DNA of 64,000 bases from Octopus sinensis (lineage: Eukaryota). The stretch's first letter is position 1; the number at the start of each line of letters is the position of its first letter. Both the position numbers and the translations under genes were made by a program. Positions 3,374-61,869 of this stretch are shown one piece after another. Below the pieces are notes generated by a model. That model made no database searches. It had not been told where the DNA came from and was given only the letters and a program-made list of their open reading frames with translations. The stretch is taken from positions 50,158,001-50,222,000 of the forward strand of contig NC_043014.1 of NCBI RefSeq assembly GCF_006345805.1, in the 5' to 3' direction.

Positions 3374-6300
3374 CTAAATGAAAAAAAAAAATTCTTGATA
3401 CTAAGTAAAATATAAACTATTGTATATGTGTATGTATGTATACATACATATACGCATACACACACATTTGTGTATACACTCTCATACACATTTGTGTATA
3501 CACTCAGACATATGAATCCAAAGCAAAAATGGAAACAAACCTAATAAAACATCCAATTTTACTAACTTTGAAAGACTTGCAAAATGTCAAAAAAAAAATT
3601 TAATAATGAGCAGTAATTAATTACTATATCATTTAGAGTTACACGGCAAAACTGAACTCAACGTGTTATGTATGATAGAAATTATATTAATAATCTCAAC
3701 CGAAAACAATGTTAGAAATTGGTTAATTCACTCTTTGTATAATAGCACCACTTTCAAGTGTTAGTACTTCTCTGGGAAGTATTCTATGAACACCAAAGTC
3801 CACCTGGGTATAATTGAATGTAATAAGGTATTTGTACTCAGTTTCCACAAGTAGTTTCTCCCAGACACAGACACCAAGTTTGCATGGGTCTTGTCAAGCA
3901 AATTTCACCTACAAGGCTATAGTCATGCCAAGGCTATGTGCTGTACAAACAAAGTCACACAACTAAAACTTTACGGCTGACACAGGGGGGGGGGGGAATT
4001 TCTAAGGTTTGTTTCACCTCTAAAATCTTGACATTTCAATATGTTGTTCCGTATTTACAGAATGAAATGTGCTTATTCAGAGTAGAGTTTTCCCACAAAG
4101 CCCAACGATATTAAATCTATTTTAAATACTTACTTTCTTGAGCTTTTGGGGGTTTGATTCTGTCTAACAGGGCAAGCAGACATTATCAATAGAAACAGTT
4201 ACGCCTATATTCTCAAAGAACAAATGCATTTAGCTTATATTCTAACTACCTTCACCTCTACTAGGTACTGATTCAAATATCTGAAGTTACAACAGTGTTT
4301 TGATTTGTTATCAAAATCGAAATCGATCCACATCAATGGAATTTGTAGTTTGTGGTACCAGTGCCGGTGGCACATAAGAGAACCATCCGAACGTGGCCGT
4401 AGCCAGCACCGCATCGACTGGCCTCCGTGCTGGTGGCACGTAACAAACACCATCCGATCGTGGCCGTGCCAGCCCTGCATGGCCCCCGTGCCGGTGGCAC
4501 TTAAAAAACACCATCTGAGCGTGGCCGTTCGCCAGCTTCGTCTGGCACCTGTGTCGGTGGCACATAAGCACCCACTACACTCACGGAGTGGTTGGCGTTA
4601 AGAAGGGCATCCAGCTGTAGAAACACCGCCAGATCTGACTGGCCTGGTACAGCCTTCGGGCTTCCCAGACCCCAGTTAAACCGTCCAACCCATGCTAGCA
4701 TGGAAAGCGGACGTTAAACGATGATGATGATGATGACTCCAGTGCTTTTTAAACAGGTTACAAGTCAACTGTTTTATAATTAAAGCTTTCTTCACTGCAG
4801 CTTAGTAATTATGTTGTTGTAGGTTCCATTAGAAGAAAGGAGAAATATATTTTATCAAATCAAATACCTAACAGTAGAAAATAACAGGAAGGCAACACAT
4901 CAGTGTCATGTACCCCAGTATAACAAAACAAGGAGCTACTATTAAATATTGCTACATCTCTCAGTCCATCAGCCCCTGAGTGCAAGGAAATGACTAGTGC
5001 CTGTACTTAAAAATTAAGGGAATTATCTGAAATTATCTGTGAATCTAATCCCATCAGTATTACTGTCAGCTGATCGAGGACCAAGGCCCTTCTTCATTTG
5101 ACACTTTTCACTTGAAACTTCATCTTTGCCCCCAAGCCATCCATCATAATTAAAATCTAAAATTTGAAAGCAATTTACATTTTTCTCATATCCCTTTAAA
5201 TGTGTCGAGTCGCGTTAAGTTCATGGTTGAAACATTCAGGGGAGGGAGGGTGTGGGTGAACACAGAACAACACCTAAAAAATACACTATCTGCAAGTAGA
5301 CATTAGTAAACAGCCAAGTTCTATCTTTATTCTGTCTGACCAATGTTTAGTTGGACTGGATTTTCACATGGAATTTACCAATTCCCACTACATGAGATAT
5401 TCAGATAGTCAAAAGTGAAGCTTCAAAATTCCCAGAGGGGGGAAGAAAAAAAAACAGGAATATGGCCTGAATAGGTTAAAGAATTGAAGAGGAAGTCTCT
5501 CTGAGGGGAGAAGAGTATATTCACAAGGGGCTAATGCTGAAAGCATTTCAATTAAAATTTATAAAAAATGAACTCAAAGACTTCTCAAACCTGAAAATGT
5601 TGAAGACTAACTCTGAGAGTGTTATTTGTATTACTTTGAGAGGTGGTGGGAAACCTTAAATAACAATTTACCAGTGTTTGATAACCAGTTTTCAGTCATG
5701 TTATTGATTTTGGGTTTTCACTGCATTCAAAACAGTTTTCTCTCTCTCACACACACACAAATTGGTTCTCTATCATCAACTGGGCCCAACATTCCCAAAT
5801 AAATTCTCTCCACTTCGAGCACAACTTCAACATCATTAGAAATCAATCAAGATCAATAACCCTAATAAGTCCCCAACAAAGACAACTGCCTCTTCTTCCT
5901 CCTGTCTTTCACTGTCAACCTATCAACCTCACCTTTCCCCACCATCTTCCAACCTCTTTCTTCATGGTCATCCTGTACCTCTTTTACAGGACCCATATTC
6001 TCTACAGCAAGCGGTGTATATGGTGCTGTTGTTAGTTGACCAACAACACTTACATGGTCCAAACTTCCCAAAATTATTTCTTTCTAAACATATTTTTTAG
6101 TCCAATGTTCTGCCGGATGGAATGTAAAGTAATTTTCTATATTCCTTAATAATAATAATGTTTCAAATTTTGGCACAAGGCCAGCAACTCTGAGGGAATG
6201 GGGTAAGTTGTTTACACCAGCCCCAGAGCTTCCCGGGAACTTATTTTATCATCTCTGAAAGGATGAAAGGCAAAGTTGACCATACCAGAATTTGAACACA

Positions 6301-7278
6301 AAATGTAAGAACAGATGGAATACCACTAGGCATTTTACCTGGCGTGCCAACAATTCTACCACCTCACTGCCTTAATAATAACAAAACTATGTTCTTTGGA
6401 GTACGGGATTCAAGCCGCTTCTCCTTATCTCCTCAAAGACATACATCATCTCGAAATAGTCCAGAAGCTGGCTACCCGCATGGTTCTTGGTCTCAAGCAT
6501 TTGTCTTATGAAGAAAAGCTGAAGACGCTCGACCTTTATTCTCCAGAAAAATGCAGACGCCGTGGTGATCTCATTCTTGCTCACAACATCATAAGCGGAA
6601 AGTGTAACCTCTCGAAAGAGCTGTTCTTCACTCCTGCTCCAGAGCGTCGGCTGCGGGGTCACTCCGAAAAGCTCTATCTGCGACGATTTTATCTCAATCG
6701 AAGGAGAGGGGCTTTCTCCATCCGGGTTGCGGATCTGTGGAATAAGCTGCCGGACGAGATGGTGAAGATGCCGACGACCGCTCGGTTCAAAGTCTCCCTT
6801 GACCACAAATGGCCTGAACTCTTTGCATGAACACCACCCCGTACATAACTCCATGTCCCCCTACATGGTCTTGCGTTTTGCTTTTTGAGCCAAAAAATTA
6901 ACCTAACCTAACCTAACATAAAGCAAAACAGTTTTGTACATTCTTCAGTTAATGTTCTGCAACATGGAATATAAAGTACTTTCTGGTATTCCTCAGTTCA
7001 ATGTTCTGCTACATGCCACCCCATCACCAGCACAATGTAGTACGCCTAATATCAATATGCCAATATGCATCAGACAGGGTTCATGTTTTGGTCATAGCTC
7101 TGTTTAGCCACAACTGACTGGCAGGACTCGAAAGTATCAAAAACTTAAAAGAAGATATCAATTCAATTTTTACACAAGCTGATGTCTCCTCAGCGAAACG
7201 AAAAGATCCTCAAATTTGCCTTCAATAATACATGCCCAAGCCAATTATACTTGCACAAACAAATTTGACCGAGCATCA

Positions 7279-7336
<58 letters not shown>

Positions 7337-7499
7337 CGCAGGAGTGGCTGTGTGGTATGTAGCTTGTCTACCAACCACATGGTTCCGGGTTCAGTCCCAC
7401 TGCGTGGCAACTTCGGCAAGTGTCTTCTGCTATAGCCCCGGGCCGGCCAAAGCCTTGTGAGTGGATTTGGTAGACGGAAACTGAAAGAAGCCCGTCGTA

Positions 7500-7540
<41 letters not shown>

Positions 7541-7917
7541 GGTTGGCGTTAGGAAGGGCATCCAGCTGTAGAAACATTGCCAAATTAGACTGGAGCCTGG
7601 TGCAGCCTTCTGGCTTCCCAGAACCCCGGTTGAACCATCCAACCCATGCTAGCATGGAGAACGGACGTTAAACGACGATGATGATGATGACGATATATGT
7701 ATGTGTATGTATATGTTTGTGTGTCTGTGTTTGTTCCTCTAGCATTGCTTGACAACCGATGCTGGTGTGTTTATGTCCCCGTCACTTAGCGGTTTGGCAC
7801 AAGAGACCGATAGAATAAGTACTGGGCTTACAAAAGAATAAGTCCCGAGGTCGATTTGCTCGACTAAAGGCGGTGCTCCAGCACGGCCGCAGTCAAATGA
7901 CTGAAACAAGTAAAAGA

Positions 7918-7953
<36 letters not shown>

Positions 7954-8062
7954 CAACCGACCAGACCATCAGATGTTGCTACACATCGCTGGTCACAATG
8001 CGTTCGCATTGTTTTTTTTAGCCTTCGAATGACGCCACCCCACTGGGTAAGCGAGCAGGCCA

Positions 8063-8098
<36 letters not shown>

Positions 8099-11000
8099 CA
8101 ATGACAGTCACTTAAGCAATGTGAAAACTGTTTATAAATTTTTAGTTTAAATCTTTCAAAAAGGTCATCGTTTTCACAATTTCCCAAAAGACGGAAGATA
8201 TAAAACCATTATCAGCATACTGCTGCCATGATGTATGATTCCAAAAAACACAGAAGGGAGGAAGGTGGGCGGGACAATTGTTTGATTATCAGATTGTAGA
8301 CTGATACTGTGTCTAGTTTCTGGGTCAGAGTAGACTGTCTTTTTCAACATAATGATGAAATATATCTAAACTATCAAACACACAATCTAAATCACATTTC
8401 TCTCTCTCTCTCTCTCTCATCAAACCCAAATGATTCCTAGATTCGAGAGAGAGAGAGGGGGGTGCAAGAGAATAAGAGGGCAAGTGAGAGAGATTGCTAT
8501 TGGCTGCACCATCGTTAACATTATGTCCTTAAAATACAGAAAAGTTACTGCTCATGATGATTATGATGATGATGAGTGACTGACTTAACCAGATGTCATT
8601 TACAATAAATGCTTGTGTCAAATGTAAATTGCTCCATTTTCTCAGAAATAATAGCTCTTTGACCTTACAGATACCTAAAATTCCCACCAGGAGGTGAGTA
8701 GCAGAAAGAGGAAACAGAGAAAGGAAGGAGTAAGAGAAGAGAAATAAACACCATCACCACCACCACCACACCACCACCACCACTGCCTGCCTGCCCACAC
8801 AATGTAAGATTTAAGTGAAAATTAAATCATCCCCAGCCCATCGTTGATTGCAAGTTAGAAATGGTTGTATTGTTGGAAGTTAGAAGTGTTAGAAGACAGA
8901 GGAAGAGAAGTGGTAAAATAATAGAAAGTTTGGTTCATAACAACTTTGTTAGAGGACAAGGAGGAGACCGTGTGCCAAGTTAGCGGGGAAGGTGGGAAGG
9001 GATATACTTCGGAAACTAGATTCAGACAAGGCCACTACCAAAGATTCTAGCAAGTCAGTGTTACAACAGAAAATGGCATCATTATTTCTAATAAGGCTAG
9101 AAACAGTAGTGGGAGGAGAGTGGAGGTCGGTCAATACAAATGACCATCCTCCAACCCCCCAACCCCCACTGCCCTAAACCAATACTTGACTGGCAGTTTA
9201 TTTTAGTGAACCTCGAAAGGATGAAAGGCAAAGCTGATTTCCACAGGATTTGAACACACAGAAAAAAAAAAAAATTTTTTTAATTAAGAAAAATGTAGAG
9301 AGCAGAAAGAGATACTGCAATGCTCTAATGATTCTTCCAATCCATTGTTGGAAAAACAACAGGAGTTTTAGTAGAAGAGGATTTGAAACATTTGCAAGAA
9401 AGAGAAAAGTTTTGACACACATTACACATATATGTTACACATATGCAGCTTTCAGAAAAGAAAATGTTAAATATTCAATAAATGGTCAAGGCATTGCCCA
9501 TGAAATGTAATTTGTGACAAGAGCAACCGTTTGATTTCATACATAAGATATACCATATTTGCCTGCATATAAAACACACTTCTATTTCAAAAAAAGGTAA
9601 TTTGTGTGTGTGTGTGTATGGGGGATTTAGTATGTTTCATCATACATTACTGAAAGATATCTTAACCCTTTCAATACCAACCCGGCTGAAACCGCCTCTG
9701 GATCTCTAGTACAAATGTCTTGTTTTCATAAATTTTGAATTAAAACCTTCCACCAGACCTTAGTCACGATTAATGTTCCTAACACCAACTTAATGATAAC
9801 GAAGTTATTTTACTAAATTCTTTGTTATATTTAAAGTAACTGAAGGAAACACAGAGCATCTCAAAATAGATACGGTAATGAAGGGGTTAAAGTGGTTTTG
9901 TAGGGGAAAAGGTATGATTGTGTGTGCACGTAAATATGATGCTGTGACAGTAGAATGGAATAAAATATGAGCTTCAGTGGTCTGGAGTGCAGGCTTCAAA
10001 CCTGTAGCTGACTGACGTCAGAGTGGTTCAATTCCACCTTTCGGGCGAAGGACCGCCCCTGGGTCCTATTTTGTTTATCACACAAGAAAACCATCCGAAC
10101 GTGGCCACACACAAGAAAACCATCCGAACGTGGCCATAGCCAGTACCGCATCGACTGGCCTCCGTGCTGCGGGCACGTAACAAACACCATCCGATCGTGG
10201 ACATTCGCCAGCCTCATCTGGCACCTGTGTCGGTGGCACATAAAAACACCATCCGAGCGTGGCCGTTCGCCAGCCTCGTCTGGCACCTGTGTCAGTGGCA
10301 CATAAAAAACACCATCCGAGCGTGGCCGTTCGCCAGCCTCGTCTGGCACCTGTGTCAGTGGCACATAAAATCACCCACTACACTCTCGGAGTGGTTGGCG
10401 TTAGGAAGGGCATCCAGCTGTAGAAACACTGCCAGATCTGACTGGCCTGGTGCAGCCTTCGGGCTCCCCAGATCCCCAGTTGAACCGTCCAACCCATGCT
10501 CGCATGGAGAACGGATGCTAAATGATGATGATGATGATATATGTAACATGAATAAACCATGTTCTGTAAGTATTTCAATTTTTTTATATTGTCATCAACA
10601 CACTACACACAGCTGACAGACAGGCAGATGGAAGTTCAACATTCCTTTCACCTTACATTCAGACCAATTTAAAAGAAAGTTTCTTAACCCTTTCATTACT
10701 AACCCGGGCCGTACCCAGCCGAAAAAATTTTTTGTTCATAATACCAACCCGGTTGAGAGAACCTATTGTTATTTAAATGTAAATTTGAACCCAAATCTCG
10801 TTGGTACATTCGTTAAAACATGTGATTTCACTTTGTAAATAGTTGGCTTATAGTATCCGACATTGCTTGAAGTGATATCTCAACTCAGTGAATTTTGGGA
10901 GATTTTTTTCCACATTTTTTTCAGCATCGATTTTTCTTCAACTTTGAAAATGAATAGAAGTTTCATGTTATCAAGCATTGATTCCGAATTTAAAGCTTTT

Positions 11001-14000
11001 TGAACGGAAAATAGGGAGATATCGAGAAAAAGAATGAATGAGGTCTTAAAGCATGTGGTGTACAATAATGAATAGATATTTTTTTATCCGTTAACCGAAA
11101 GCAGCGATTCCGAAGAAACAAAGCGGCAATGGCGACAGCAAAGACAATTTTACATCAGAATGAAGTAAAAAAACTTTTTAAATGTTTTTATTAGCAATTT
11201 TTCTGAGGAGATAGTTTATCTATAGTCTTTCTTAGGAAGCGAAACCATTAGACTATTTTTTTCAGTATGCTTGTTTGGAGCGATCACTGTGGAAGCAAAC
11301 TGTTTCGCAGATTGTAAACAAACACAAAATGGGGGATCAAAATTCGGAAAATTTGTGAAGCAAAATACTAAGTACTGCAGTGGATTTAGTTTTTATACAG
11401 GGAAAATAATGTTAGTCGGCATGGCCTAGGGAACGATGTGGTCTGGAATTTATCACTTCCATACCATAACCAGGGCCATATATTATTTTTTGACCTATTT
11501 CTTTAGTTCGGTCAAACTTGCGGTGGATTCCAGTATTTCAGTTTATTCCACCTTTATGGTACACCCATTGTGCATTAAATTCAACTGATAAATCTAGTGA
11601 TGTGCACAATTCTTCTTTATCAAAATTTTGTTGCATACCCATTTGAATATTAGCTGATGATTCATTTTCTATGGTGATGTTTAAACAAAATTTTAATATT
11701 TTTACCTTTTGCTCAATTTAAAATGTTAATATTTTTACCTTTTGCTCAATTTACCTGGATTTACCTGTAATTAAAGTCACTTTGAGACAAAAGTTATGCA
11801 ATAGAATTGATTAAGAACCCTTTCTTTTAATTATGTTCCAAATATCATATTAATATGTTGATAAGTAAAAAAGTTACAGTAATTTAATGAAACAAGCCTA
11901 AATTCATGATTATTTTAGAATTTAATTGAAACTCATGAGGAATGTATTTTGGTCAGAAATATAGTAACGAAAGGGTTAAGTAAAATGTAAATCCCATATC
12001 AGGTGAGTTATATTTGCTGAGGAATGAGATAGGAAAGGATGAGACTTTACCATTTATAATTGCTGACTTGCTGTAAGCAATTTCCCACAAGTTTGTGATA
12101 TTTTGGCCAGTTTTCAATATTTTATGGTTAACAATTATCATGCCCAGCAGACTTATGCTCATTAAGTTTCCTAGCCTACAACACACACAGCCTTCCATAC
12201 ATAGTATGACTGCATTAGATGCAGAGCAATTTTTTTTCATATATTTATAACTAGAAAACTGCATCTTTACACACTGGCAAATATGGTATACGCATACACG
12301 CAATTCTAACAACCCAAGCAAATGTATAACAACAGCATTGAATAACAACCCTCATGATTTTGTTACTGATGAAAAGAATTTTAAGTGAAACGGAGACATT
12401 TAAAAATACAGGTAGTAAATATGTACACAGTTAGTGAGAAACTAAATATTAAAAACAAAAAGAAAAACATACAAAAAATAAAAGAAACAGACAAACAAGA
12501 CAGATAGACAGACAGACAGACAGACAAAGAAAAAGAACTGAGCCAGACATGCATAACTATGATTATCATCATCATCATCATAGTAGTACAGATGAAGTAG
12601 AACATTAATATGAAAGTTCATTTGGTAAATGTTTAATTTGTCAAGAGATTGATTGGAGAGAAACATCACAAGTCAAGAGAGTAAGCAATGATTAATAATA
12701 ATAATAATAATCATAATAATGATAATAATAACAATGACATGATCAAATCAGCAGTGAAGCCACAATTGAGAAATTTCATTATCAATACATTATATTCGCC
12801 ATTTAAATAAAAACAAAAAAACAAAAAAGAAAAAAAAAAGGGTCAGAAAGAAAGTCAAGAAATATTTAAGACAGTTCAATAGCTGAAATCATTAAAAATG
12901 AAATCTTACTCCTATCATTAGTGAGAAAATGTGGGGGGGCTGGAGTCACAAGAAATCATATACACACACACGTGTGTGTGTGTATGTGTAGAAGATTGAT
13001 GATGCAAGGACTGCATAAACACATCAGAGAGAAGTCAGAATTTATTGGTTGGACCAAATAAGAAACGTGAGAGGAAATGAGCGTGTGAAATAGAAAATCA
13101 ATGATTAATAAAACTGTAGTTAGTGTTGAGGAGAAAATTGACGAATCCAGGGATTGATTAATTGGGAAGACAAAAAATGAGAGAAAAAGCTTCTTTTCGA
13201 GTGGACAAGGAGAAACAGGATGAGACGAAGTATCACTGTCTAGAGAGAGAGATATATTTACAACAGTAGATAAAAAGTTTGAAAATATTAAAAAGACAGA
13301 TAATTGTAAGTAGATGTGGTTTCAGCATGCAAAAAAACAATGTAACAGCTTTTCACCAGTGGTCACTGAAGTTACAACTTTGGTCACAGTGACAGCAATG
13401 CCACTTGTTGTGCTAGTACTGATACCAGTAGGGTTCCTAGTAGAAGGGCTCATAGTGGTAAAATATGGATCTGCGCAAAAAATAAAGGGTTTTAACATGT
13501 CACTAAAATTGATTCATCTTATCTTGAAGATGCGAGATGCCGAAATGTTAGAGAAGGCGAGAGAGAGAGAGAGAGATAATAGGGGAGGGGGAAAAAAAAA
13601 AAGAAAAATAATAATACCAGCTAAGGATTACTAACGTGAAATTGGGTACTATAAAATATTAAAAACAAAATATTACGATTTCAATGGAAAGTTGAACAAA
13701 AAAAAAAAAATGCATGCGTAAAAAAAAGTAAAACCCAAGTAGACCAAACTTAAGGGTTTTGGTAGATTTAAAAAACAAATATCAAATAGAAAACAACTTT
13801 CAAAAAGTTCATCCCATTATAGGAGAGGTGCAATGGCAGACTTGAATGGCTAAAAGCAAAAGGGCTTCTGTCTATACTGATAGAGATGACGTCTTGAGAA
13901 CATTCATTGGTGTTTATAGAGAAATGTCTGTGAATGGGCATGTGTATATAATTATTGACATGTACATCAATGATGCGGATGTTACAGGGGACAGTAGACA

Positions 14001-20000: not shown

Positions 20001-23000
20001 CAAAAAAACACAAGCATAAAACCATAAGGAAATGCTGACAAATACTTGTGCTGTTGTCAACAACTTCTGATTTTGGCACAAGGCCAGCAAATTTGAAGAG
20101 TGTGTGTGTGTGTGTGTGTGTCCATTACATCAACTCCAGTACTTGACAGGTACTTATTTTAACAATCTTGGAACGATCATAGGTAAAAGCGACCGTGGCA
20201 GAATTTGAACTTTAAGCACCAGAAGAAATGCTCAGCATTTTGTCCAGCATGCTAACGATTCTGCCAGCTTGCCACCTTAAATCACTAAAATTTATAATGA
20301 ATGATTAAAAAACAGCTCAATTCAGCCATATGATGGTTATTTGCTGGTTTTGAAACATGCCTCCATCTTAGACGGAAACTAATGTACAATAGACAATAAA
20401 ATCACAGTGAACAAATTGAAGATTTATTTTGAGAGAAAAACCATTCAATTTATATAGGCTTTAAAAAGAAAAAAATTCCATTATATCTGAAAATTGTAAT
20501 GACCAATCAGTATATATATACATATATAAATATATATATATGTATTTCAATTTTGACATGCTTAAACTAAAGTTTTATTCTAAACGTTACTTGTAACCTC
20601 CTTCCTTACTGTGCAACAAATCATATTAAAATAGAAAGATTATTAGGTTTTGAAAGAGAAAAATATATTAATTTATGGAAAAGTTTTGTCAATTCAAAAG
20701 CTATAAATGAAAATTAGTACAAAAAGACTTAATGGCAAGATTAAAAAAAAAAAAGAAAAGAAAAAAGAAAAAAAGAATCACTTATGGATTTCGATGGTTC
20801 TTCAGGATCTAAATTATTTTCTGAAAGGAAAAATGTAACTTGCAAATCACTAGTAAACAAAACAACACACAAATCAAATTTAAAAAATGCTGGAACAATT
20901 AGATAAGATCAAACAATGACCAAGTCAAATAGATAACATGTTAACTCCATCTTATAGTAGTAGTAGTAGTAATAATAGTATTGATTAGTTTCAGAGACAT
21001 GATTGAAAACTGTTGAAACTGCAAATGTCTAAAATTAAACTCATTTTCACATTGATTATTAGGAAACTATTTTAAGAAAGATCAGTAATAGCTGTACATT
21101 GATTGAGATACTGTGGTGTGAAATAAGAGAGAAGGAGGTAACTTAAGGGCAGAGAAGGACAAAAAGTCAAACAGCTTCTCAAAATAGTTAATTTATGAAA
21201 GAATTTTCAGAACCACAGAAGTTAATACTGTAGTTACAATTAACGACTTTAGAGAGAGAGAGAGAGAGAGAGAGAAAGCAATTTTTCTACAGTTGAAATA
21301 AGCTTAACAAGGCATTAAGAAAACCAATTTTCTCCCAACTGGATAAATAAAGATCAGCAGGTGGTACTCGGAGATATTATGTGTCAGACACATACCCTAT
21401 CTCTATAGAGGGGTAGGGTGTCTATGAGGTAGAAAACTAAAAAGAAGCCAACAAAGTGAGGTTCCCCCCACAACCGACTGCTTCTGTTTCTTAACAGAGA
21501 AGGTGGGGGGTTCCAAAAGCACAGGTAACTATGGAAAAAAACAAGGTAGAAAAAAGAATGAGCGTCAGTTGGTAATGCTGTGAAAAAGAGATTATATATT
21601 GCTTGGGTGTAAAATTGCAATATTGCATGAATGCCGACAATGAGGGGAAAAGTAGAAATAAAAGAGGAGAATACACACTATGGAATGCGTACTGCTAGTG
21701 GGGTGGAACAAAGGAACATAAAAGGAGCTGGGGAAAAGACAATTAGACTTTTTAGAGAGAGATGGAAGAAATGGTGATAGTTGATGCCTTGAGGATGAAT
21801 TTCATGTAGAAGGTAACAGAAGACTGCAAAAAGTCATCCCAAAATGAGCATAAAATGGTGATGAGGAATGTTATTAAAAACATGTTATTACAGTTATGAT
21901 TAGCTTACAAGTATTTCAGGATACTAAATGTTGAAATGAGGGCCTTAACTTGGAGCAAAGTTCGTAAGGAAAGAAATCAGAGGTAGAGGAATACAAGGAA
22001 GCTGGTGTGAGTGTTCTTGGTAACAGAAGTAGATACAACTGAAAATTAAATATTTTAATGGCTAACTTACCAAAAAAATGACTATAGTCACTTATTTGAT
22101 AAGTGCTAAGTAAATATATTCCTACATGAAGTCTATAAAGTAGGAAAAGTGGTGTATGAAGACAAAGAACTAGTTCCAGAATTAAGACAGTTTGATAAGG
22201 CTAGAAAGGTTTTTGATTTGGAAGAGAAATAAATGTAATTTTATTAAAACAAAGAAACTAGAGAGGAATCACAGATTTTAGCCTTCAGCATCTTACCTAC
22301 CTTTCAGCTGGAAATTGGAAAAAAAAATTTCTTAATTCAATGTATAAATATGAAAATGTATTGCAATGATGATGGATTATAGAATAAACGATCCAAGAAT
22401 AATGAAATGAAACCTTATGATGTGAATGGATTGGCTCATCAAAAATCAATAATGAAAATTAACAGACAGTAATTGACACACACGCACATATACAGAGAAT
22501 TTCAATAGCAGAGAATTCAGAAATATAAAGCAATGAAAAGTGTGAGCTTCTAGTCAGTTAACAAAATGGGAGAAGAGAAAGAGCAAAACACACTCACACA
22601 CACCATGCAATAAAAGGTTTGTTAAACCAGAAATTGAAAAACCTCCCTTTGCACTCCTACACTAAATATTTCAAGCTTATTAAGATATTAAAATTCTGAC
22701 TGCCCACATGATAGCAATTTTTTGTTTGTTTATTTAATTTTTTTTAGTTTTTAAAATAGACTAGTTAAAAAATTTTTTTTTTCATAACGAAGATCTTCGG
22801 AAGGGACCTATTTAGTAGGTGGGAATCAATGAGTATTGAGTGGAAAAGGTTAACAGAAAAATATGAACAATTACTGGAACTGTTTTAAGCAGATCAATCA
22901 ATAGGTTTGAGAGCGTGTTAGTAGCAGAGCAGTTTTATAGAGCAAAATAAAGATTCTCTTGCGGCAGATACTTAGCAGTCTCAGAATTTTGTGAGAAAAT

Positions 23001-26000
23001 ATATACACCATCTGCATTGCAGAACTATTTAACAACACACTAAGTTGTTAAATTCACTTCCATGATGTGTCAAAATTTGATTGATATATATATATAACAC
23101 TATTCTACATTTGGCTATAAAAGTAATGCAAAAAGAGCTCAATACACTTGAAAGAGCTTAATCTTAAAGCAGAACAGAGATCATCAGTTCTGAACAAATA
23201 TGTATGTGCACACGAAACTATTGGAGCTAGATACGTTCCCGTTACAGCACCCAAAAATATAATCTAACTACATAGATCAGTCAAAGCTCATCATTAAAAG
23301 AACCAAATAAGCTTCCGTCAACTACTGAAATATACTGATATTTCTAAAACCACATTAACCCTTTCGTTACTGTATTTATTTTGAGATGCTCTGTGTTTCT
23401 TTCAATTATTTTAGATGTAACAAAAAGTTTAGTAAAATAACTTCGTTATCATTAAAGCTAGTGTTAGGAACATAAATTGTGACTAAGGTTTGCTGGAAGA
23501 TTTTAATTCAAAACTTATGAAAACAAGACATTTGTACTACAGAGCCAGAGTCAGTTTTTCAGCCAGGGTGGTATCAAAAGGGTTAAGAATTGTTTCTCTA
23601 TTATATATTTTAACCCTTTCATTACTGTATTTATTTTGAGAAGCTCTGTGTTTCTCTCAATTACTTTAAATATAACAAAGAATTTAGTAAAATAACTTAG
23701 TTATCATTAAGCTAGTGATAGGAACATAAATTGTGACTAAGGTTTGGTGGAAGATTTTAATTCAAAATTTATGAAAACAAGACATTTGTACTAGAGATCC
23801 AGAGGCGGTTTCAGCCGGGTTGGTAACAAAAGGGTTAATCAACTACAACAATAATATGCATGATTTTTGCTATGGGTAAGTTTTGCTGTCTAATACTGGG
23901 AAGAAAATATATTCAAAACTGTTGAATAACTTGATAATTTAAAAAAGAATTTAAATTACACCTTTTGGTGTTAACTCAACTACATTGAAATTTTTTTTTT
24001 TTTATTATCCTGACTGTTTAAACCGGTCATATATGGCCCAAATACTCTACCTGTATTGTGTTCAAACTGGCCAGATCCAGCCTCTTACACCTACCCGACA
24101 ATGTTATTCTAAAAATTAACAGTCACATCATTGAAATCTCAAAGCTACAAGATAATGCATGATTAAATCAAAACAATGTGAACAAACAAGCATCACATTT
24201 GACAGAGCACCTCTGCATAGTTACTTGACCTGCTAAAAAATGCAAGCAAACCTCCTTCAAACTTACTCTCTACTATCTTCAGAAAGTAGAGAGACATTAG
24301 ACAATGTAGTCCTAGATAAGCAACATGCAAGTGAAAAGGTTGGTCATGGTCGGAACACCCTTGATCATAGGCCTACTCACTCAGGGCTAAACAACAACTA
24401 GTTCTCATCTATGTTTTTGTATTTGTGGCGTTAGGACGGGCATCCAGCCGTAGAAACATTGCCAGATCAAACTGGGCCTGGTGCAGCCTTCTGGCTTCCC
24501 AGACCCCAGTTGAACCGTCCAACCCATGCTAGCAAGGAAAGCGGACGCTAAACGATGATGATGATGATAATAAGTTTAGAAGATAGAGGTATGAATTACA
24601 TTTAGAGCTGAAGTGATAAGGAGCAAATATTTTCAACACGAGCTTAATATCTATCTATAGACATATACACACACTTTCAAATTCAATGCATACATATAAC
24701 AGTGCAACAAATATTAATGCATGCAGTGAATACAGTCAACTTTAGGACTGATTGTTCCTATATACACAAATATAACATTCAGCTGACAACAACGTTTAAA
24801 ATCAATATTCTTTATTGTCTTTATAGTTGATGTGTGTGTGTGTGTGTGTATAATACATACATACTTACACATATGTATACATACAAACATGCATGCAGAC
24901 AGACACACAAAAATTGGATGAAGACATGGAATTTAAATCTTTAGTTTTTTTAATATTAATTCTGACTGATGTAGTGTCTACACAAAACAAGAGAGAGAGA
25001 AAGAGATAGATAGAATGTGTGTTAAACTATTAGTTTATTTAGATCTATCTTTATCATATACACAGGGTGCGGTGAACAAACTGTCATCAAAATTACGCAA
25101 AGATGAAAATAACACCGACATCTCATTTTTTACTAAAATTACATAAAAATATCTTGAAATATTCAATAAAATTGCCATTGGCTTCGACCACAGCATCCAG
25201 ACAACTTCAGCATCTCCTGCAACTCTTCCGGACAGTCTCCTTGTTTAAGTTGGTGAATGCTGCCGTAATCCTTGCCTTCAATTCAAAGGAGTTTTGTTGG
25301 TCTCTTACTCAACTGCACCCCACACATAATAATCAAGGGGGATTGCAGTCTGGGGAGTTAGGTGGCCAGATGTTAGGGGTGAGGTGGTCGCAGAAATTGT
25401 CTGACACCATGACTGGGTCCTCCTGCTTGTATGGCATGGTGAAGAGTCCTATTGCCAGACATAGGGTCTTCCAGCAGCCACCCTCTTGACCCAAGGTAGC
25501 ACTACCTCCTCCAGGCACTTGATGTAGACCTCCGTGTTGAGTCTGAGGCTATGTGGGAAGATGAATGGAGGCATAACATCGCCATCACTAGTGATCTCTC
25601 CAAACATCATGATGTTGACTGGATGTTTGATTTTTATCGCTCTCGGTACATGTCCTCAGATTGACACCCAAACACTGAAATGTTCGTATTGGAGCTTCCA
25701 GCGTGAATGCCAAGCAGTGCAGCATGTTGTTTCCAAATTTCTGGCAATGCGAACTGCGCTGTGGTGCCGTTTTTCTCACAGACGATGCCCAACTGACCCT
25801 ACTATACTGTGTAGTCAACAAAATCATAAACAATGCGCCTGCACGAAATTAAGAGTATAAAATGGCAACAATTTACCCATCGCACCCTGTATATACATGT
25901 ACATAAAAATGAAAGCTATCTGGCAGACTTTTACAAAAAAAGAAGAGAAAATTCTTTCTTTAATAAAAGAAATTGTAACTTTTTATCCAACTGATAAGAG

Positions 26001-27469
26001 AAACAGTTTGCAAATAACTACTAACATAACCAGAGACAATGTTATCAAGTTTTCTTGTCAATAAAGATTGACTAATGCATTTTCGTTGTCTTAATCCTAC
26101 AGAAGGATTTACTCCACATAAGCTCTTAAAAAAGGGATGGGGACTTAAACAACAAGAAATCAATAATTTCTTTTTTCCAAAGTAGATATTGGCCTAATGT
26201 AAAAACAGCTTTTTCTTACCCTACCCTCAATGAAGGGTAGGAACCAAAAACACTTTCCACCCATCATTGCCATTCTATAAACTCACCAGGTCACCATATT
26301 ATACAATTATTCTGGAAGTAATTGGGACAATATTCCAGAAGTTGTTTTAGGTCTTTAAAAAAGGAAATTGACATAATGTATCCAGGTCCTTGAAGAGAAG
26401 GAATAAAATCTTAATTTAAGTATATTCTAAAACTTTCAATTTAAAATGAAGGATAAATTCACCAAAAATATAAATGTATTTATTACTTGCAAATTTGTCA
26501 TGGAAAACTGAAGTGAAAAGATGGAGGAAAGCTAGAAAAATTCTTCATATGATATATTCAGAGAAAAAGAAGCTTATGAAGTGGATTAATGAGTTAAGAA
26601 GCAGAATTAATTAGGAACATGCTGCCTCGTTTTGAAAGTGAAATATTTATAACAATGACCAAACCAAAAGAGGTTTGAAACATTTCTCTCTCAAAATTTA
26701 AATGAAAATAAAAGAAAAGACTGAAGATGAGCAAATATAGATGAATGAATAAATGAATGAATAAATGAATGAATGAATGAATGGATGGATGACCGACAAG
26801 ACTCGCCATCTGCAATGTTTGGCAGTCGTTAAGGGACAAAGGAACAGTTCCCATTACAGTTATTGCAAACTAACCTTTGGTTGTAGCCTTGTAAATATTA
26901 GTTTTCGGGTTTGATGCTGTGCCAGCAGGTGATGGATCTGAAATGATTGATGAGCCAGGGGCATCTTTATTTCATTTATGATTGGAGAGATCAGAGTGAA
27001 GATGACACATATACTAGTCGACAGTGTACAAAGTAGAGTTGAAATATTGCAGAACCAAAGTGAATTGTTGTCAGTGGACAGTAATGAAATGACGATGAAT
27101 GAACACTTTACATAATGAATAGTTGTTATTGTAAGCAATGGACAGCAGGATAATTAATTAGCAGAAATAATTAGCTATAAAATATTTTATTTAAACCCTA
27201 AACAAACAAATATGAAATTTGGCTTAAAAGTTTAAAATCTGATAATGGTTTATAATTAGGTTATCTAAGTGAAGATTTTTTTTTTTTCTATAATCTTTCC
27301 AGGTATAGTTATGACCATTATTAAAAAACAAATATTTTACCATCACATTTTAATATGATTATTGAACAGAGAATGGAAACACAGAACAACACTAATGTCA
27401 TCATGGAATAACTAATACCAAAACAAGATTATAAAACAAACTGCTTCAATTAACCACACTTCTCACTAT

Positions 27470-27502
<33 letters not shown>

Positions 27503-29726
27503 CACAAAGATATTGAGACAAAAGTGAAATATGAAAGAAAAGTCATTGGAGAAGAAATGCCAACATAAAAATATGTAAAAAAAAACAAAACATTTGAATA
27601 AATGAATAGTCACTGGATGCTGTCACAAGATGATACATTCAAGATGTTTATGTATTTGTTTCTAAGAAGCTTCACCAAAACACCATCATTGTTGGTTAAC
27701 ACAGCATTAGAACTGATGAAACAGTTGAAAAACTGTCAACAAAACAGTAAAGAATCTACTGTTCAAAGAGGTTAGGAATTTTGATTTCCGTGGTACTATG
27801 TAGAAGACTATGAAAACGTTATATACTAGACTATGTACAAGACAAAGAAAGATTGTTATATAAACTGGGATCTCATGCAAGAGACTTAAAAATTCTTAGT
27901 TTGACAAAATGATATATATAGTATGAATGAACAAGGGATGATCCATGCAATGTGATATAATGGAGGTGTAAGTTCAAAATTATGATGAACATTGTAAAGA
28001 AGCCGGTCTATCTCACCATGTTGAGAAGCGTGTATTACAAACTTCTGATTTTACAAGTGCGTAATGAATTTAAATAAGCAGCAAATAACCAAATGCATAC
28101 ATAGGAAATCAGACAAGAAGCTGAAATGGTTAGAGTTCATGTAATGCCACTGAACTGTTTCATATAGTGCAGGTATATTGAAATGATTTAGTGATTGCAA
28201 TCACATCTACACTTCTCTACCATCATGTGGCATCTGTAACAAGTGGGGTCTGTACATGTATTTTAAAGAGCCTCAACTTCAATGTCAAGTCACACTAAGT
28301 TTACTGTGAAGTTTATGTTAAGAGGACAAATGTTTGTGGAAGACACACACTAGTAATATTAACCAAATAACCAAAAAGAAGATCACTTTTACATTTATTG
28401 TATATCAAAAATAAAATGCTTCACTAAGTGCTACATGTTCTGCTGATGCCGTTCAGTACCATCTATCTGACGAAAAGGTACAACTGTTTAAATAAGGGAT
28501 AATAGTTCAACCTGTTAGAAACAACAGCAAAATCTCCCTTAAATCACATCCCCAATGTTGTTGCAATAGAAAAACAAAAATCCATTAAAATGTTTCTGAA
28601 AACAGTCCTCTGGACATTACATAATCCAAGACACTAATATCTGAAATAACTCTGATCATAGGTTGATTTACTCTAGCAGTTATCTGGAGCAAAATATGAT
28701 TAAATTGTTAGGCCAGTTGCTATGATTTTGCACATTCAGGCATGCAAATTGCAAGAAAGTTCAGTTTTACTTTAAGCAGTCAAGTGGAGTCTATTGCAAG
28801 TGATGGGAAAGAATTACTCAAGAGGATTCCTTAAAAAAGTAAAAAATTTTTTTAAAAAAAGTCCTTTCTTGGAGCCAGTAGTAGAGGAGACAATAACAAG
28901 AATTATATATCTAGAAAAAAAGGTTAAGTATAGAAACATTTAGCAATACATAAACACACAGAGAAAGAAAGGAGGAAAGATTTAAAAAAAAAAAAAAGAT
29001 TAAACTAATAAATACATAAAATACACGTTTCTATTGCTGTAAAATGAAAAATATTTTTTTAAAAATTCAGTGATTCCAATTTAGCTGTTAAATAAAACTG
29101 AAAAATGTTAAAAACTTTTTATGCATTTAGCTTAAAATCTCCCCCAGTAAATATTGAGCACCACCAGTTCTAGGTATTTCTGGTGCTTCATATTAGTAAC
29201 AACAGCCAAATTATGTAGAGTGCTTAAAGCAAATTTAGATGAACAAGGTGGTTGGAGAGGTAGATTATCTGGGGTTTTTCTAAGGTGCACAATGAGCTTA
29301 CCATATTCATCTACATATTCGTCTGGGTATTCTGCAGAGTAAAAATATACAAACAAGTGTATTTCTAAAATAAATTGTAGACTTCAGTCAATCAATTGGG
29401 TTGTTTAGAAATAGTGGGAATAAAATGAAAACTATATTTAATGAAAAAAACTTTGGAATTAAGTATGCCACCTTAAATTTAAATTTAAATATAATTATTG
29501 GAGTGTCAATAAGAATGGGTTCATTTAAAGAGAAAAAAAATAATGAAACAAATAAGACAACATTTAGTAGAACACATAACACAAGCAATAATGACATGGT
29601 TTGAAGTAAGAGTAAGCAGCAGTGAAAAAATTTCTAATTAATATTCATCGTTAAAAAAAAAAAGGACAATTCCACACAGTATGCAAAACAAGATTCACTT
29701 AAGCAAAATAGATTTTTTTCTTTTTT

Positions 29727-29785
<59 letters not shown>

Positions 29786-31805
29786 GCAATTGAGAGATAT
29801 TTACTTCTGGACCAATCAGAAGAACAAAAATGTGATTAAAAAACTATCTATTTTTTAATTAGAAATTTGAATATATAAAAAAAAAAAAATGTGTGACGAT
29901 TCAGGTTAAATCTGATTATATAAGAAATTGCGCAAATTAAAAATTATTCTAAAGTTTACTCTATAAAAAGAACAAAGCTGTTATTTAAAATTCAGTAAAG
30001 AAATTATCTAAATAAACAGCAAGTCATTAAGTCTAATAATCTTATTAGGCTTAACACAAAGCTCAACGGGCCATGATCTTGCCCAGATAGATGCATTTAA
30101 TTTATGGCCGTTTGTTGGGGTCTAATGTCACTCAAACACTCCAATACCCCCCACATCCACCCCACTAGAATGCAAGAGGACTAATAGCTCAACTAATGAC
30201 TTTTCAGATGATGTAAAATTTGCCACCATTGTATACTAAGAAGATATTCTAACTATTTTGTGCATGGTAGTCACATTTTCATGAAATGTGCTCGGCAGTT
30301 CTTGCTATGTAAGTGCAAATCCCAGCGTTTTATGGGTTAATTAAAAACCAATTCTAATATGCTTTTTGTTAATTATTTAGGTAATACTGAAAATATGCAA
30401 GAGTTCTACTTTAGTTCCATAATTTTTGTGTCCCTGAAGCCATTCCTACAGAAAGGATAAATATTTATAGAATAAGGTAAATTTTTTAATAAAAATGAGC
30501 TGAGTGGCTGTGTGGTAAGTAGCTTGCTAACCAACCACATGGTTCCGGGTTCAGTCCCACGGCGTGGCATCTTGGGCAAGTGTCTTCTGCTATAGCCCCG
30601 GGCCGACCAATGCCTTGTGAGTGGATTTGGTAGACGGAAACTGAAAGAAGCCTGTCGTATATATGTATGTGTGTGTGTTTGTGTGTCTGTCCTCCTAGCA
30701 TTGCTTGACAACCGGTGCTGGTGTGTTTGCGTCCCCGTCACTTAGTGGTTCGGCAAAAGAGACCGATAGAATAAGTACTGGGCTTACAAAGAATAAGTCC
30801 CGGGGTCGATTTGCTCGACTGAAGGCGGTGCTCCAGCATGGCCGCAGTCAAATGACTGAAAAGAGATAGATATAAAGATACCTAGTTGAGATATTAATAA
30901 ACAGAACCTCGAAATGCAATTCAAGGAGTAGTGCTCTCATCAGTTTTCCACTATCTACAATGGACTTATTGATATATTTTGAAGCTTTAATCTGCAAAGC
31001 TGATTCACTTAAAACAAATCATTCTCTTTGCTTTCCAACAGGTTTGAAAACTGCTCATAGACACTGTGACAGGACAAACAAGATCACAATATACTAGAAA
31101 AAGCTATTTTGATATCTATCAGTTTATCTACAAAAACAATTGGGAACCGAAGACAGTGACTAGAGTTTAAATTCTTCTAAATAAGAATCGTGCCCAAACA
31201 TCAAGGACTGACTCTGAAAAAATGGTTAGGCATTGACTGACAATCACAGTGTCTTCAATGGACCTCATACCCTACATTCCACCATTGGCTAAGCAATAGA
31301 GAGTTCATGTGATTTCAGGATATGTCAACTCTATATTCCATCACTGACATACCAACCAACCTAGACAAGGCTGACATTTGACTAACAGCAAAGCAAGATA
31401 GAATACCATCAACGGAGCACCAAATTAGCTTAAAATTTTAGAAGGAGGAGATTATGTTTATAGTTAAACAATTCGAATACATAATCATGCCTGCCAGCTA
31501 GCAGCAGCAACAACCACCTTTAATATTACTGTATTAGATGTAAAGTTCCTTTAAAACTGTTATTAAATATCAACTGATCGACCATTTAAATGATAGACGA
31601 TAATTCTTTCCATGATAGACCCGATTGTCTTTCTTTTTTCTTTGAGTGTGAGGTTTATTACTTCAACTCCAGTCCTCGAATGGTTTTATTTTATCAATAC
31701 TACCAGAAAGATGAAAGGCAAAGTTGATCTGAGCGAGATGTGAACTCAAAATCTAAAGAGCCAGAAGAAATACCGCTATGCATTCTGTCATTTCAGTCCA
31801 CTTCC

Positions 31806-31839
<34 letters not shown>

Positions 31840-32906
31840 TGATGATGATAATGTATAAATAAATAAAATGCCCAAAAGACCTTTGAGAGAAGAGAAATAG
31901 ATTAAAAGTACAACATTTGATAAAAAAAATTAAGGAGAATATATAAACCAACAATAAATCTTTATATTTTTTTTCAGGTACCAGAAGGAAATGCCTGCAG
32001 GAATAAGTGCTCATTAAATTTAGCAAGAGAGGTAAAGAATGGCTTGAAGAAGAATTTATAATTCCCTCAATTGTGTTATAGTTCTTACCAGATTCTTCAA
32101 TACTATCAGGTGAATCTATATGAATATGAAAAAAAAGTGGGAACAATTTCATTTTTAAATTTGATAAACAGCTAAAAATATATTTCTTAGTTACTGTGTT
32201 GTAGTACTAATTTTTCTGTTTTTTTCTTTTTTTTTCTTAATTCTTTTTACACTAAAAATAGGAAGTATCAAATGCCTAAAATACATGCTACATATATCAT
32301 ACATATACATGCAAAAACAATTTTTCAACGCTGAAATTATTAAATCTATTTTTAATGAAAATCTTATTTGTGTACTTCAAATCCAAAACATTAACATCAC
32401 ACAGCTCAAAAATCAAATCCAATTGTAAAACTAAACAGAACATTTTACAAATACAGTAATTTAAATAACATAACATAACATTAAATAACAGAAAATAATA
32501 CTTGGGTGATGATGAAATAAAAACTGTGTTGGAATCTAATGTCAAATATTCAGTTTTATAAGTTCATGCAACAAACAGGAGATAACTATTTTATATATAA
32601 CCTTTTTAACAACATTTCCAGCAAAAGACAATGGGAGGGAAACTAACACATTTAACCAATATTATGAGGAAATAAAAAGGTAAAACTTACGTTTTTTTGT
32701 CACAATAATCACAGGTCGTGGAGCTGAACCTCCAACTTTATTAACAGCTACAACTTGTACCTCGTAGTGTGTATCAGCTTTTAAGTTTGTAAGTAATGCA
32801 GAGGTCTTTCCTTCAACAGTCCTTGTCATATAGTCTCCATTTTCCTTACTGTTGTCAACTGCCCAGGGCTCTTTTTCTGTTATATGAACCTGTGTATGTC
32901 AAAGGT

Positions 32907-35900: not shown

Positions 35901-37083
35901 ATTTGGTGTTTGGAGTCAAGTATTCAAGTATAACAGTCTGGGGTTTACTTGGTTCTACAAAGAAAAGGTTGAAACGTGAAAATTGTTAGACAAAAGCCAA
36001 AATACATTTAAACTTGCTGGTACTTCTGCTAGCACCATTACATTACCTATTTCTTTATTACCCACAAGGGGCTAAACATAGAGGGGACAAACAAGGACAT
36101 ACATAGGTATTAAGTCGATTACATCGACCCCAGTGCGTAACTGGTACTTAATTTATCGACCCCGAAAGGATGAAAGGCAAAGTCGACCTTGGCGGAATTT
36201 GAACTCACAACGTAACGCAGACGAAATACCGCTAAGCATTTCGCCCGGCGTGCTAACGTTTCTGCCAGCTCACCGCCTTACACCATTACATTACCGAAGA
36301 CTACATCATATTCCTGCGAATAAAATGTTGATTTCCCAACCTGCCAAACAGCCATGCACACCAAATTGTTGTTATAAATGCAGTTAGGCCTAAATTTGAT
36401 CAGGCACTGATATTGAATGATTTATCTTCAAATAGTGTCAGTCGATTGACAATCAGAAGCCAACAAATGAAGTCTCAATGCTGTTGCTCAACCTGATGGA
36501 AACAGCTGTTAAATCTCAATTCAAAATTATGGGATCTTTTCGCTTTGACCGGCAGATTTTTAAAATAATTTTCTACCAAAAATACCAATATGGTCCAGAA
36601 AGGAAATGTAGTGTCAAGGGAAACGGCAGTGGGATAGATGTGCTGCTGGTGGTGGTGGTGATAGTAGCAGAAGCAAAATGGGGATGAGGAAGATGAAGGT
36701 GAGGTGCCCATATGTAATATGGGCATACACAGTGTTTCCAGAACTGTTTTGCTATGATGGGAAAGTCTTTTCAAGGACCATGCATCACCAGACAGCCTGG
36801 TCCCCTGTGACACTCAGAGTCCTGTGGTCAGCCTCTACCACCATGTCCCATGTCTTCCTGGATGTCCTTCAACCACAAGCTCCAGCCATGTTTAGTGATT
36901 GGCACTTCTTTACAGAGCAATCCTCATCCATACACACCACATGTCCCTACCAGTGCAGTCTTTTTTTTGTACAGTACATCTGATTCCACTTAGGCTCAGT
37001 TTTTCTCCCAGCACATATTGTCATTTATGTATACTTTTATTTGCACATACAACAGAGCATGCTCATTCATTTCTTTCCAGTCT

Positions 37084-37122
<39 letters not shown>

Positions 37123-61370: not shown

Positions 61371-61869
61371 ATATATATATATATATGTGCATGTGTGTGT
61401 GTGTCCCCCACAACATCGCCTGACAACCGATGCTGGTGTGTTTATGTCCCCGTTATTTAGCGGTTCGGCAAAAGAGACTAATAGTATAAGTACTGGGCTT
61501 ACAAAAGAATAAGTCCCGGGGTCGAATTGCTCGATTAAAGGCGGTGCTCCAGCATGGCCGCAGTCAAATGACTGAAACAAGTAAAAGAGTATGTAAAAAG
61601 AAAGTTTTACAATTTCGATCATTCAGTGAGGAGTCAGTTGTACTTATGACCTCCGTACAGCCTGCGTAGTGTTAAAACTGATGTAATTGAAGATCAACAT
61701 TGGTCAATAAACGCAAATATAGAAGGAAGGAAATTCAAAAGGATAGACATTCAGGGGAGGAAGGATTGGGAAAGTGATTGATGTGCGCTCAGCTGGTGGA
61801 GAAGAGGCTGTTACAATGGACTGGGATTTGGTAGTAAGTTTACTACTATACACTGAATTAGTAAACTGA

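Follow-up and report, generated by a model that had tools for sequence, protein, structure and literature searches.

Evidence for a five-cassette variable stalk in an octopus NCAM-family gene

A gene from the NCAM (neural cell adhesion molecule) family in Octopus sinensis very probably carries a variable stalk made from five alternative cassette exons (E1–E5), with two further candidates (E6 and E7) most likely being chance segments; this is the best overall explanation of our data. The window, i.e., the whole stretch analyzed, comprises 64 kb (assembly GCF_006345805.1, contig NC_043014.1, forward-strand positions 50,158,001–50,222,000), and coordinates below count from its first nucleotide (nt). 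It lies within a gene annotated in RefSeq as "neural cell adhesion molecule 2", which occupies ~172 kb of the assembly on the minus strand and ranges from 115 to 176 kb in octopod records. Proteins of the NCAM family have a central part in axon fasciculation and synaptic plasticity, for example apCAM in Aplysia learning, and their isoform diversity outside the vertebrates is known mostly as transmembrane (TM) versus glycosylphosphatidylinositol (GPI) anchoring. A preliminary description of this DNA had proposed at least seven mini-exons, possibly used independently, between the second fibronectin type III domain (FN3-2) and the membrane anchor. Five of the seven are present in annotated isoforms, and their use appears neither free nor exhaustive.

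Cassette exons downstream of FN3-2

The last constitutive exon ahead of the array, FN3-2b, ends in ...ACAAAAAAAC|gtaagt (AAAAAAC|gtaagt), in phase 1, as previously proposed, and with a final C. All seven segments downstream have the positions, lengths, AG/GT borders, phase 1-1 and stop-free reading ascribed to them, on the minus strand, and each ends in G or A. Their borders and splice-score ranks are as follows.

32691–32889, minus strand: FN3-2b, last constitutive exon ahead of the array (open reading frame and splice reading)
32089–32115, minus strand: E1, 27 nt, tatag|ATTC..TCTG|gtaaga, rank 2 of 1,144
29302–29331, minus strand: E2, 30 nt, ctgcag|AATA..TATG|gtaagc, rank 1 of 1,144
26875–26937, minus strand: E3, 63 nt, tttcag|ATCC..AAAG|gttagt, rank 14 of 1,144
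20782–20820, minus strand: E4, 39 nt, tttcag|AAAA..ATAA|gtgatt, weak donor, rank 39 of 1,144
13357–13470, minus strand: E5, 114 nt, gcgcag|ATCC..ACTG|gtgaaa, rank 3 of 1,144
12910–12939, minus strand: candidate E6, 30 nt, ctccag|CCCC..AGGA|gtaaga, rank 31 of 1,144
4134–4163, minus strand: candidate E7, 30 nt, gttag|ACAG..GAAA|gtaagt, rank 10 of 1,144

The evidence for E1–E5 comes from annotated proteins. A protein search with the largest single exon (exon H, 41370–41720) gave an end-to-end alignment with an 850-residue protein, CAI9737963.1, 'neural cell adhesion molecule 2 isoform X5 [Octopus vulgaris]'. With this protein as query, we obtained ortholog clusters of O. sinensis, Octopus bimaculoides and Argonauta hians, and the set compared comprised 13 O. 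sinensis (X1–X13) and 12 O. bimaculoides (X1–X12) RefSeq isoforms together with one Argonauta model. Word-indexed homolog searches were uninformative for reasons of search method and not of biology: the spliced FN3-to-stalk query returned no match, and low-complexity words dominated the search with the alignment of the C-terminal region. Apart from O. bimaculoides X12, which has a different terminal exon, the sequence following ...VIIVTKK in the RefSeq isoforms consists only of E1–E5 pieces plus a TM or GPI exon.

O. sinensis, TM stalks: E1+E3+E4 (X1, X2, X5); E3+E4 (X3); E4 (X4); E1 (X6); none (X7)
O. sinensis, GPI stalks: E5 (X8); E1+E3 (X9); E3 (X10); E1+E2 (X11); E1 (X12); none (X13)
O. 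bimaculoides, TM stalks: E1+E5 (X1); E1+E3+E4 (X2); E5 (X3); E4 (X4); E1 (X5); none (X6)
O. bimaculoides, GPI stalks: E1+E5 (X7); E5 (X8); E1+E2 (X9); E1 (X10); none (X11)

E1 is thus included in 7/13 O. sinensis and 6/12 O. bimaculoides isoforms, E2 in one of each (X11 and X9, respectively), and E3 in 6/13 O. sinensis isoforms and O. bimaculoides X2; counterparts of these three also occur in Argonauta. E4 is found in O. sinensis X1–X5 and O. bimaculoides X2 and X4, and E5 in O. sinensis X8 and O. bimaculoides X1, X3, X7 and X8. The Argonauta model has, before its TM exon, an E1-like RSPGSLDES, an E2-like EFPDDYLDEY, an extra 21-residue piece and an E3-like segment. Neither the extra Argonauta segment (NSNVSHMLSVTIIDIKLSVPV) nor the terminal exon of O. 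bimaculoides X12 has a convincing counterpart in the window. E6 and E7 are present in 0/25 RefSeq isoforms of the two species and are missing from the Argonauta model as well.

The split codons at the junctions allow the borders to be checked to the base. The window DNA predicts H where C precedes AT (KK-H-SPDS, KK-H-PSPA, KK-H-PYFT), D where G precedes AT (ES-D-PSPA), Q where C precedes AA (KK-Q-NNLD) and E where G precedes AA (ES-E-YPDE, TK-E-NNLD). Where a TM or GPI exon follows, the split codon encodes L, V or I, depending on whether C, G or A precedes the T (KK-L-ENKE, ES-V-ENKE, SI-I-ENKE). Since every junction residue in the isoforms is the one predicted from the window DNA, the borders of E1–E5 are base-exact, and at the level of annotated proteins E1–E5 are verified as genuine alternative cassette exons. 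They are already contained in the automated RefSeq annotation and are not new to databases.

The placement of the array after FN3-2 therefore stands as described, and its extent is smaller than the 28 kb first given: the verified cassettes span 32115–13357 (18.8 kb), and the anchor lies beyond the window. The full-inclusion reading of the stalk corresponds to no annotated isoform, the largest number of cassettes in one isoform being three.

Splice-site scoring and the status of E6 and E7

We counted the segments over 1–32690 that are bounded by AG and GT, measure 24–120 nt, are a multiple of 3 and are open in phase 1-1. The sense strand contains 1,144 of them and the antisense strand 988; the formal features are by themselves no better than chance. 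The sense segments were ranked with a generic donor/acceptor weight matrix, with the antisense strand serving as a source of decoys; 14 sense versus 11 antisense segments reach a summed splice score of at least 4. With the verified E4 no higher than rank 39 and decoys of equal quality on the antisense strand, splice scoring is not decisive, and sequence alone cannot separate true from false exons. All seven segments lie outside within-window repeats, which is weak evidence since only 18% of the region is repeat.

After removal of verified exons and their sub-variants, 6 sense candidates (including E7) score at least as high as E7, versus 5 on the antisense strand; for E6, the numbers are ~24 sense and 17 antisense. 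E6 and E7 are probably chance AG..GT open segments in the intron. The claim of seven exons accordingly holds for E1–E5, which occur in RefSeq isoforms, and fails for E6 and E7, which occur in none and score no better than antisense decoys.

Combinations and their relation to the anchor

In the two Octopus species together, 10 of the 32 possible combinations of E1–E5 are annotated, with 11 stalk-plus-anchor combinations in each species. The stalk adds 0–43 residues between FN3-2 and the anchor in O. sinensis and up to 50 in O. bimaculoides. The combinations common to both species are no cassette, E1, E1+E2, E1+E3+E4, E4 and E5. E2 occurs only alongside E1 and the GPI anchor, in both species. 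E4 occurs with the TM anchor only (5/11 TM versus 0/11 GPI combinations; Fisher p 0.035) and E5 never with E2–E4 (0/5; Fisher p 0.054), both p values being nominal and serving as leads only, as isoform models are not independent samples. Cassette use appears non-independent, and cassette choice may be partly coupled to anchor choice. The up to 2^7 = 128 forms envisaged at the outset for the case of independent use are replaced by a ceiling of 32 with five cassettes, only 10 of which are annotated and whose use looks non-independent.

Conservation of the cassettes

The folded core is 84.8% identical between O. sinensis and O. bimaculoides and 56.5% identical between O. sinensis and Argonauta. 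Against this background, the identities between the two Octopus species are 8/8 for E1, 9/9 for E2, 19/20 for E3, 8/12 for E4 and 25/37 for E5, and E1–E3 (100, 100 and 95%) are conserved above the immunoglobulin (Ig)/FN3 core. Identity to Argonauta is 62% for E1, 67% for E2 and 40% for E3, whose core motif PK(T/S)N(I/V)YKA is kept. E4 measures 48 nt in O. bimaculoides (..KSISDS|) versus 39 nt in O. sinensis (..KSI|gtgatt), a 9-nt in-frame donor shift, and at the position of the O. bimaculoides donor the window lacks a GT (20773–20782, minus strand). E5 is 123 nt in O. bimaculoides versus 114 nt, with a 3-codon indel; the length changes of E4 and E5 between species are multiples of 3 only. E1–E5 are thus neither unused nor constitutive, and E1–E3 are conserved beyond the core, all of which is contrary to what would speak against a cassette array. 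A search of 150 representatives for stalks of other NCAM-family proteins yielded only one further member.

A side observation concerns the acceptor of E3. The 27 nt immediately upstream (26938–26964, minus strand) contain no stop in the E3 frame, in which they encode APGSSIIS, and the Argonauta E3-like exon contains ..PVGPSIISDSST... These features point to an upstream 3' splice site at E3, either alternative or ancestral (aaataaag|ATGCCCC).

Composition and proposed working of the stalk

The cassettes differ in composition. E1 encodes the acidic peptide (H/D)SPDSIEES, with a net charge of -3 and an S-x-E motif, which is the Golgi casein kinase consensus. E4 is likewise acidic (net charge -3). 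E3 is Pro/Ser/Thr-rich (29% Ser/Thr plus 3 Pro), and E5 is mucin-like, with 47% Ser/Thr; both are candidates for mucin-type O-glycosylation. E2 has three Tyr and five acidic residues (net charge -5), and two of its Tyr are retained in Argonauta (EFPDDYLDEY). Sulfotyrosine clusters occur in acidic flexible segments, a context similar to that of E2 (PMC9372746), and E2 may be such a cluster. That cassette combinations vary the length, charge and Ser/Thr content of the stalk is borne out by the isoform and composition data.

The five cassettes occupy the phase-1 intron after the last FN3 exon, and any subset preserves the reading frame, because all are phase 1-1. Each split junction codon exchanges one residue (H/D, Q/E or L/V/I), depending on the base with which the preceding exon ends, and the transcript ends outside the window with either the GPI-signal exon or the TM plus cytoplasmic exons. 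The modules of the resulting stalk differ in chemistry: E1, E2 and E4 are acidic, E3 is Pro/Ser/Thr-rich and E5 is mucin-like. We propose that the stalk variants set ectodomain height, flexibility, O-glycosylation (E3, E5) and negative charge; they may also alter susceptibility to juxtamembrane shedding. The phase 1-1 symmetry is a necessity for any in-frame cassette in a phase-1 intron and not a special design. Similarly, the earlier statement that no skipping combination creates a junction stop holds but is trivial, given that none of the upstream exons has T as its final base.

A more specific proposal is that the stalk is not a free code and instead follows a few regulated, anchor-coupled programs, with E4 used with TM, E1+E2 with GPI, and E5 excluding E2–E4; E2 would be a sulfotyrosine/acidic binding module and E5 an O-glycosylated spacer, the whole being an independent cephalopod invention parallel to NCAM1 MSD1. 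We regard this proposal as rather doubtful at present. If true, such programs would let octopus neurons tune NCAM height, shedding or ligand binding.

Alternative explanations

That none of the segments is an exon and all are chance open frames in a long intron has next to no probability. The many segments on both strands that satisfy the same formal description speak for it, but for E1–E5 it is refuted: their peptides occur in proteins annotated in three species, and the junctions agree to the base. The opposite view, in which seven independent cassettes yield up to 128 stalk forms, is very unlikely. All seven segments are indeed AG/GT-bounded, open in phase 1-1 and in unique sequence, and E7 (rank 10) and E6 (rank 31) outrank the verified E4; yet neither occurs in any of the 25 isoforms, the sense strand has no clear excess over the antisense strand, and isoforms with at most three cassettes, 10 of 32 combinations and apparent exclusions do not fit independent use. 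A narrower version holds that E6 and/or E7 are real exons that are rare or tissue-restricted and were overlooked by automated annotation. Standard aligners often overlook short exons, E7 has a strong donor (AAA|gtaagt), and E6 lies only 417 nt downstream of the verified E5. However, the same pipelines caught 6-nt and 27–30-nt exons in this gene, both candidates are missing in both species, and their scores resemble those of antisense decoys, so that we consider it unlikely that either is a rare exon.

It is also improbable, to a similar degree, that E1–E5 are spliced but that their variation is functionally neutral noise of the splicing process within a disordered linker. In favor of this are the shortness and probable disorder of the linker, the rapid evolution of E4 and E5 (67–68% identity, indels and a donor shift), and one assay in which vertebrate NCAM with or without MSD1 was equally adhesive. 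Against neutrality, conservation of E1, E2 and E3 exceeds that of the folded Ig/FN3 core, all three are kept in Argonauta, the same combinations recur in two species, and every length change is in frame. The five-cassette stalk with chance E6 and E7 is hence preferred, although several points weigh against it. The absence of E6 and E7 from the annotation is compatible with rare or tissue-restricted use, and a low splice score does not preclude a true exon, as E4 (rank 39) demonstrates. The XP_ isoforms of RefSeq come from automated modeling, and their long-range combinations of cassettes and anchors may be partly assembled. The glycosylation, sulfation, shedding and height attributed to the stalk are predictions from composition only.

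Core exon model of the gene

Stop-free stretches and splice-site reading gave 13 constitutive minus-strand exons between 61055 and 32691. The first 12 encode Ig1–Ig5, FN3-1 and FN3-2a (34015..61055; splice and frame reading, Pfam, and match to XP_036366934.1), and the thirteenth is FN3-2b.

60905–61055, 51132–51268, 49060–49194 and 46468–46605, minus strand: constitutive exons 1–4
44122–44234, 43864–44020, 41824–41966 and 41370–41720 (the last being exon H), minus strand: constitutive exons 5–8
40020–40125, 37808–37978, 35820–35954 and 34015–34142, minus strand: constitutive exons 9–12
58304–58309, minus strand: 6-nt micro-exon CCCGAG, cttttcag|CCCGAG|gtaaat, in the 9.6-kb intron that splits Ig1

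The conceptual product contains five Ig domains (I-set/Ig stretches) and two fn3 domains by Pfam, is collinear with solved NCAM2 fragments (2wim, Ig1–3; 2jll, Ig4 to FN3-2), and is an exact substring of O. sinensis isoform X2, XP_036366934.1. By this ectodomain order of five Ig followed by two FN3 domains, the gene is of the NCAM/Fas2/apCAM type, in agreement with the preliminary description. Its domain borders are mostly phase 1, as is usual among Ig-superfamily genes.

The micro-exon inserts Pro-Ser (ESKF[PS]ISIRNDG). CCCGAG is the sole match to the required pattern on the gene strand, with 0.22 matches expected over the whole window and both strands. Of the 13 O. sinensis RefSeq isoforms, 12 carry the insert and X2 lacks it; it is likewise missing in O. 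vulgaris and O. bimaculoides.

Anchor and cytoplasmic exons

O. sinensis isoforms X1–X7 end in a TM segment plus cytoplasmic tail, and X8–X13 in DTGSRIMDSTASFNCNSHLLMAVNAFLCCLLALL, a hydrophobic C-terminal signal. The octopus NCAM gene would therefore provide both TM and GPI anchoring, with GPI attachment itself being a prediction. The TM exon (ENKEVPITAAS...GGVAGLIIALILIILIILDLICYF...) and the GPI-signal, cytoplasmic and signal-peptide exons have no match in the window (tblastn with the TM, GPI and cytoplasmic peptides); the anchor, cytoplasmic and signal-peptide exons are located past the two window ends. A hydrophobicity scan for a TM or GPI exon inside the window yielded only low-complexity or repeat artifacts, such as a GGT-repeat 'GGGGVVVVV' at ~8.7 kb.

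The juxtamembrane cytoplasmic motif (C-Y-F ... G-x-x-M-F) is present as DLICYFKFEKGVTMF in Octopus and Argonauta, and the same pattern is found in NCAM-like P0137. Outside the window, a 33-residue cytoplasmic cassette (QETTLLTDKQQKEEVEQAGEENKEAATEEGVTD) is alternative in O. sinensis (included in X1–X4, X6 and X7) and conserved in Argonauta, is lacking in every O. bimaculoides model, and represents a further axis of isoform diversity. In O. vulgaris CAI9737963.1, also outside the window, a truncated GPI exon, the 8-residue GECEENIA and the TM exon are joined, which reflects either an error of the model or a further mini-exon situated between the GPI and TM exons.

Repeats and mobile elements in the window

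Sequence that recurs within the window accounts for about 23% of it, partly in the form of long (TA/CA)n-type microsatellites. Fragmented open reading frames of retrotransposons without long terminal repeats lie in introns, antisense to the gene; the copy at 61.9–63.5 kb matches Pfam Exo_endo_phos_2 and RVT_1, and that at ~52500–54200 has no Pfam match. A dispersed repeat of ~400 nt (GGTGGCACATAA... family) has up to ~15 copies in the window.

61865–63497 and ~52500–54200, plus strand: fragmented non-LTR retrotransposon open reading frames
49860–50840, plus strand, and 25336–25860, minus strand: open reading frames of mariner/Tc1-like appearance, those tested having no Pfam match
4332–4737, 10108–10552, 17389–17854, 24423–24572 and others: copies of the ~400-nt dispersed repeat
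7279–7956, 29718–29789 and 56500–57000: long (TA/CA)n-type microsatellites

Comparison with known systems

A close counterpart of the octopus stalk is MSD1 (muscle-specific domain 1) of vertebrate NCAM1. MSD1 is located between exons 12 and 13, i.e., between FN3-1 and FN3-2, and its insert is Pro/Ser/Thr-rich and O-glycosylated. It has been described as 'a four-exon group' of small exons. In both genes, a group of very small in-frame alternative exons supplies a short linker in the membrane-proximal half of the ectodomain, in GPI and TM contexts; the octopus group has five members of 27–114 nt in 10 combinations. The Pro/Ser/Thr-rich insert resembles octopus E3 and E5, for which the likeness is one of composition only. 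In contrast to MSD1, the octopus array follows FN3-2b ahead of the anchor, has five cassettes instead of four, shares no sequence similarity with it and includes the acidic/Tyr-rich modules E1, E2 and E4; the array probably arose independently of MSD1. The background given in the preliminary description, namely MSD1 between the FN3 domains and anchor choice in Fas2/apCAM, agrees with the literature.

Within the family, TM/GPI alternative anchoring is common to NCAMs across bilaterians (PMC10084454). Drosophila Fas2 isoforms differ 'primarily by their C-termini', and Aplysia apCAM has TM and GPI forms (PMC4810158). These orthologous family members resemble the octopus gene in choosing between the two anchors by alternative splicing, and in the literature we found no multi-cassette stalk described for either Fas2 or apCAM. 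The neuronal micro-exon program that depends on Srrm/eMIC is conserved in bilaterians (PMC8797185), and the octopus gene likewise places very short exons (6 and 27–30 nt) in a neuronal adhesion gene. Only E1 and the 6-nt Pro-Ser exon fall within its size limit of ≤27 nt, the likeness being one of length only, and E3–E5 are longer than typical micro-exons. In CD44, combinations of variant exons are inserted into the membrane-proximal stem (PMC9351704). The variant exons v2–v10 offer a functional analogy, not a homology, as combinatorial cassettes that alter length and glycosylation of an adhesion-receptor stem; CD44 differs in belonging to an unrelated protein family and in having larger variable exons, several with defined ligand or glycosaminoglycan-attachment sites.

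We found no paper describing the octopus mini-exon stalk array. The result is a modest one, given that its exons are already in RefSeq models and that cassette mini-exons in adhesion receptors are familiar. Nonetheless, the octopod gene adds a conserved five-cassette stalk, a 6-nt Ig1 exon and a cytoplasmic insert, and its stalk is a concrete instance in which evolution in parallel with the MSD1 hinge of NCAM1 and the stem of CD44 can be tested.

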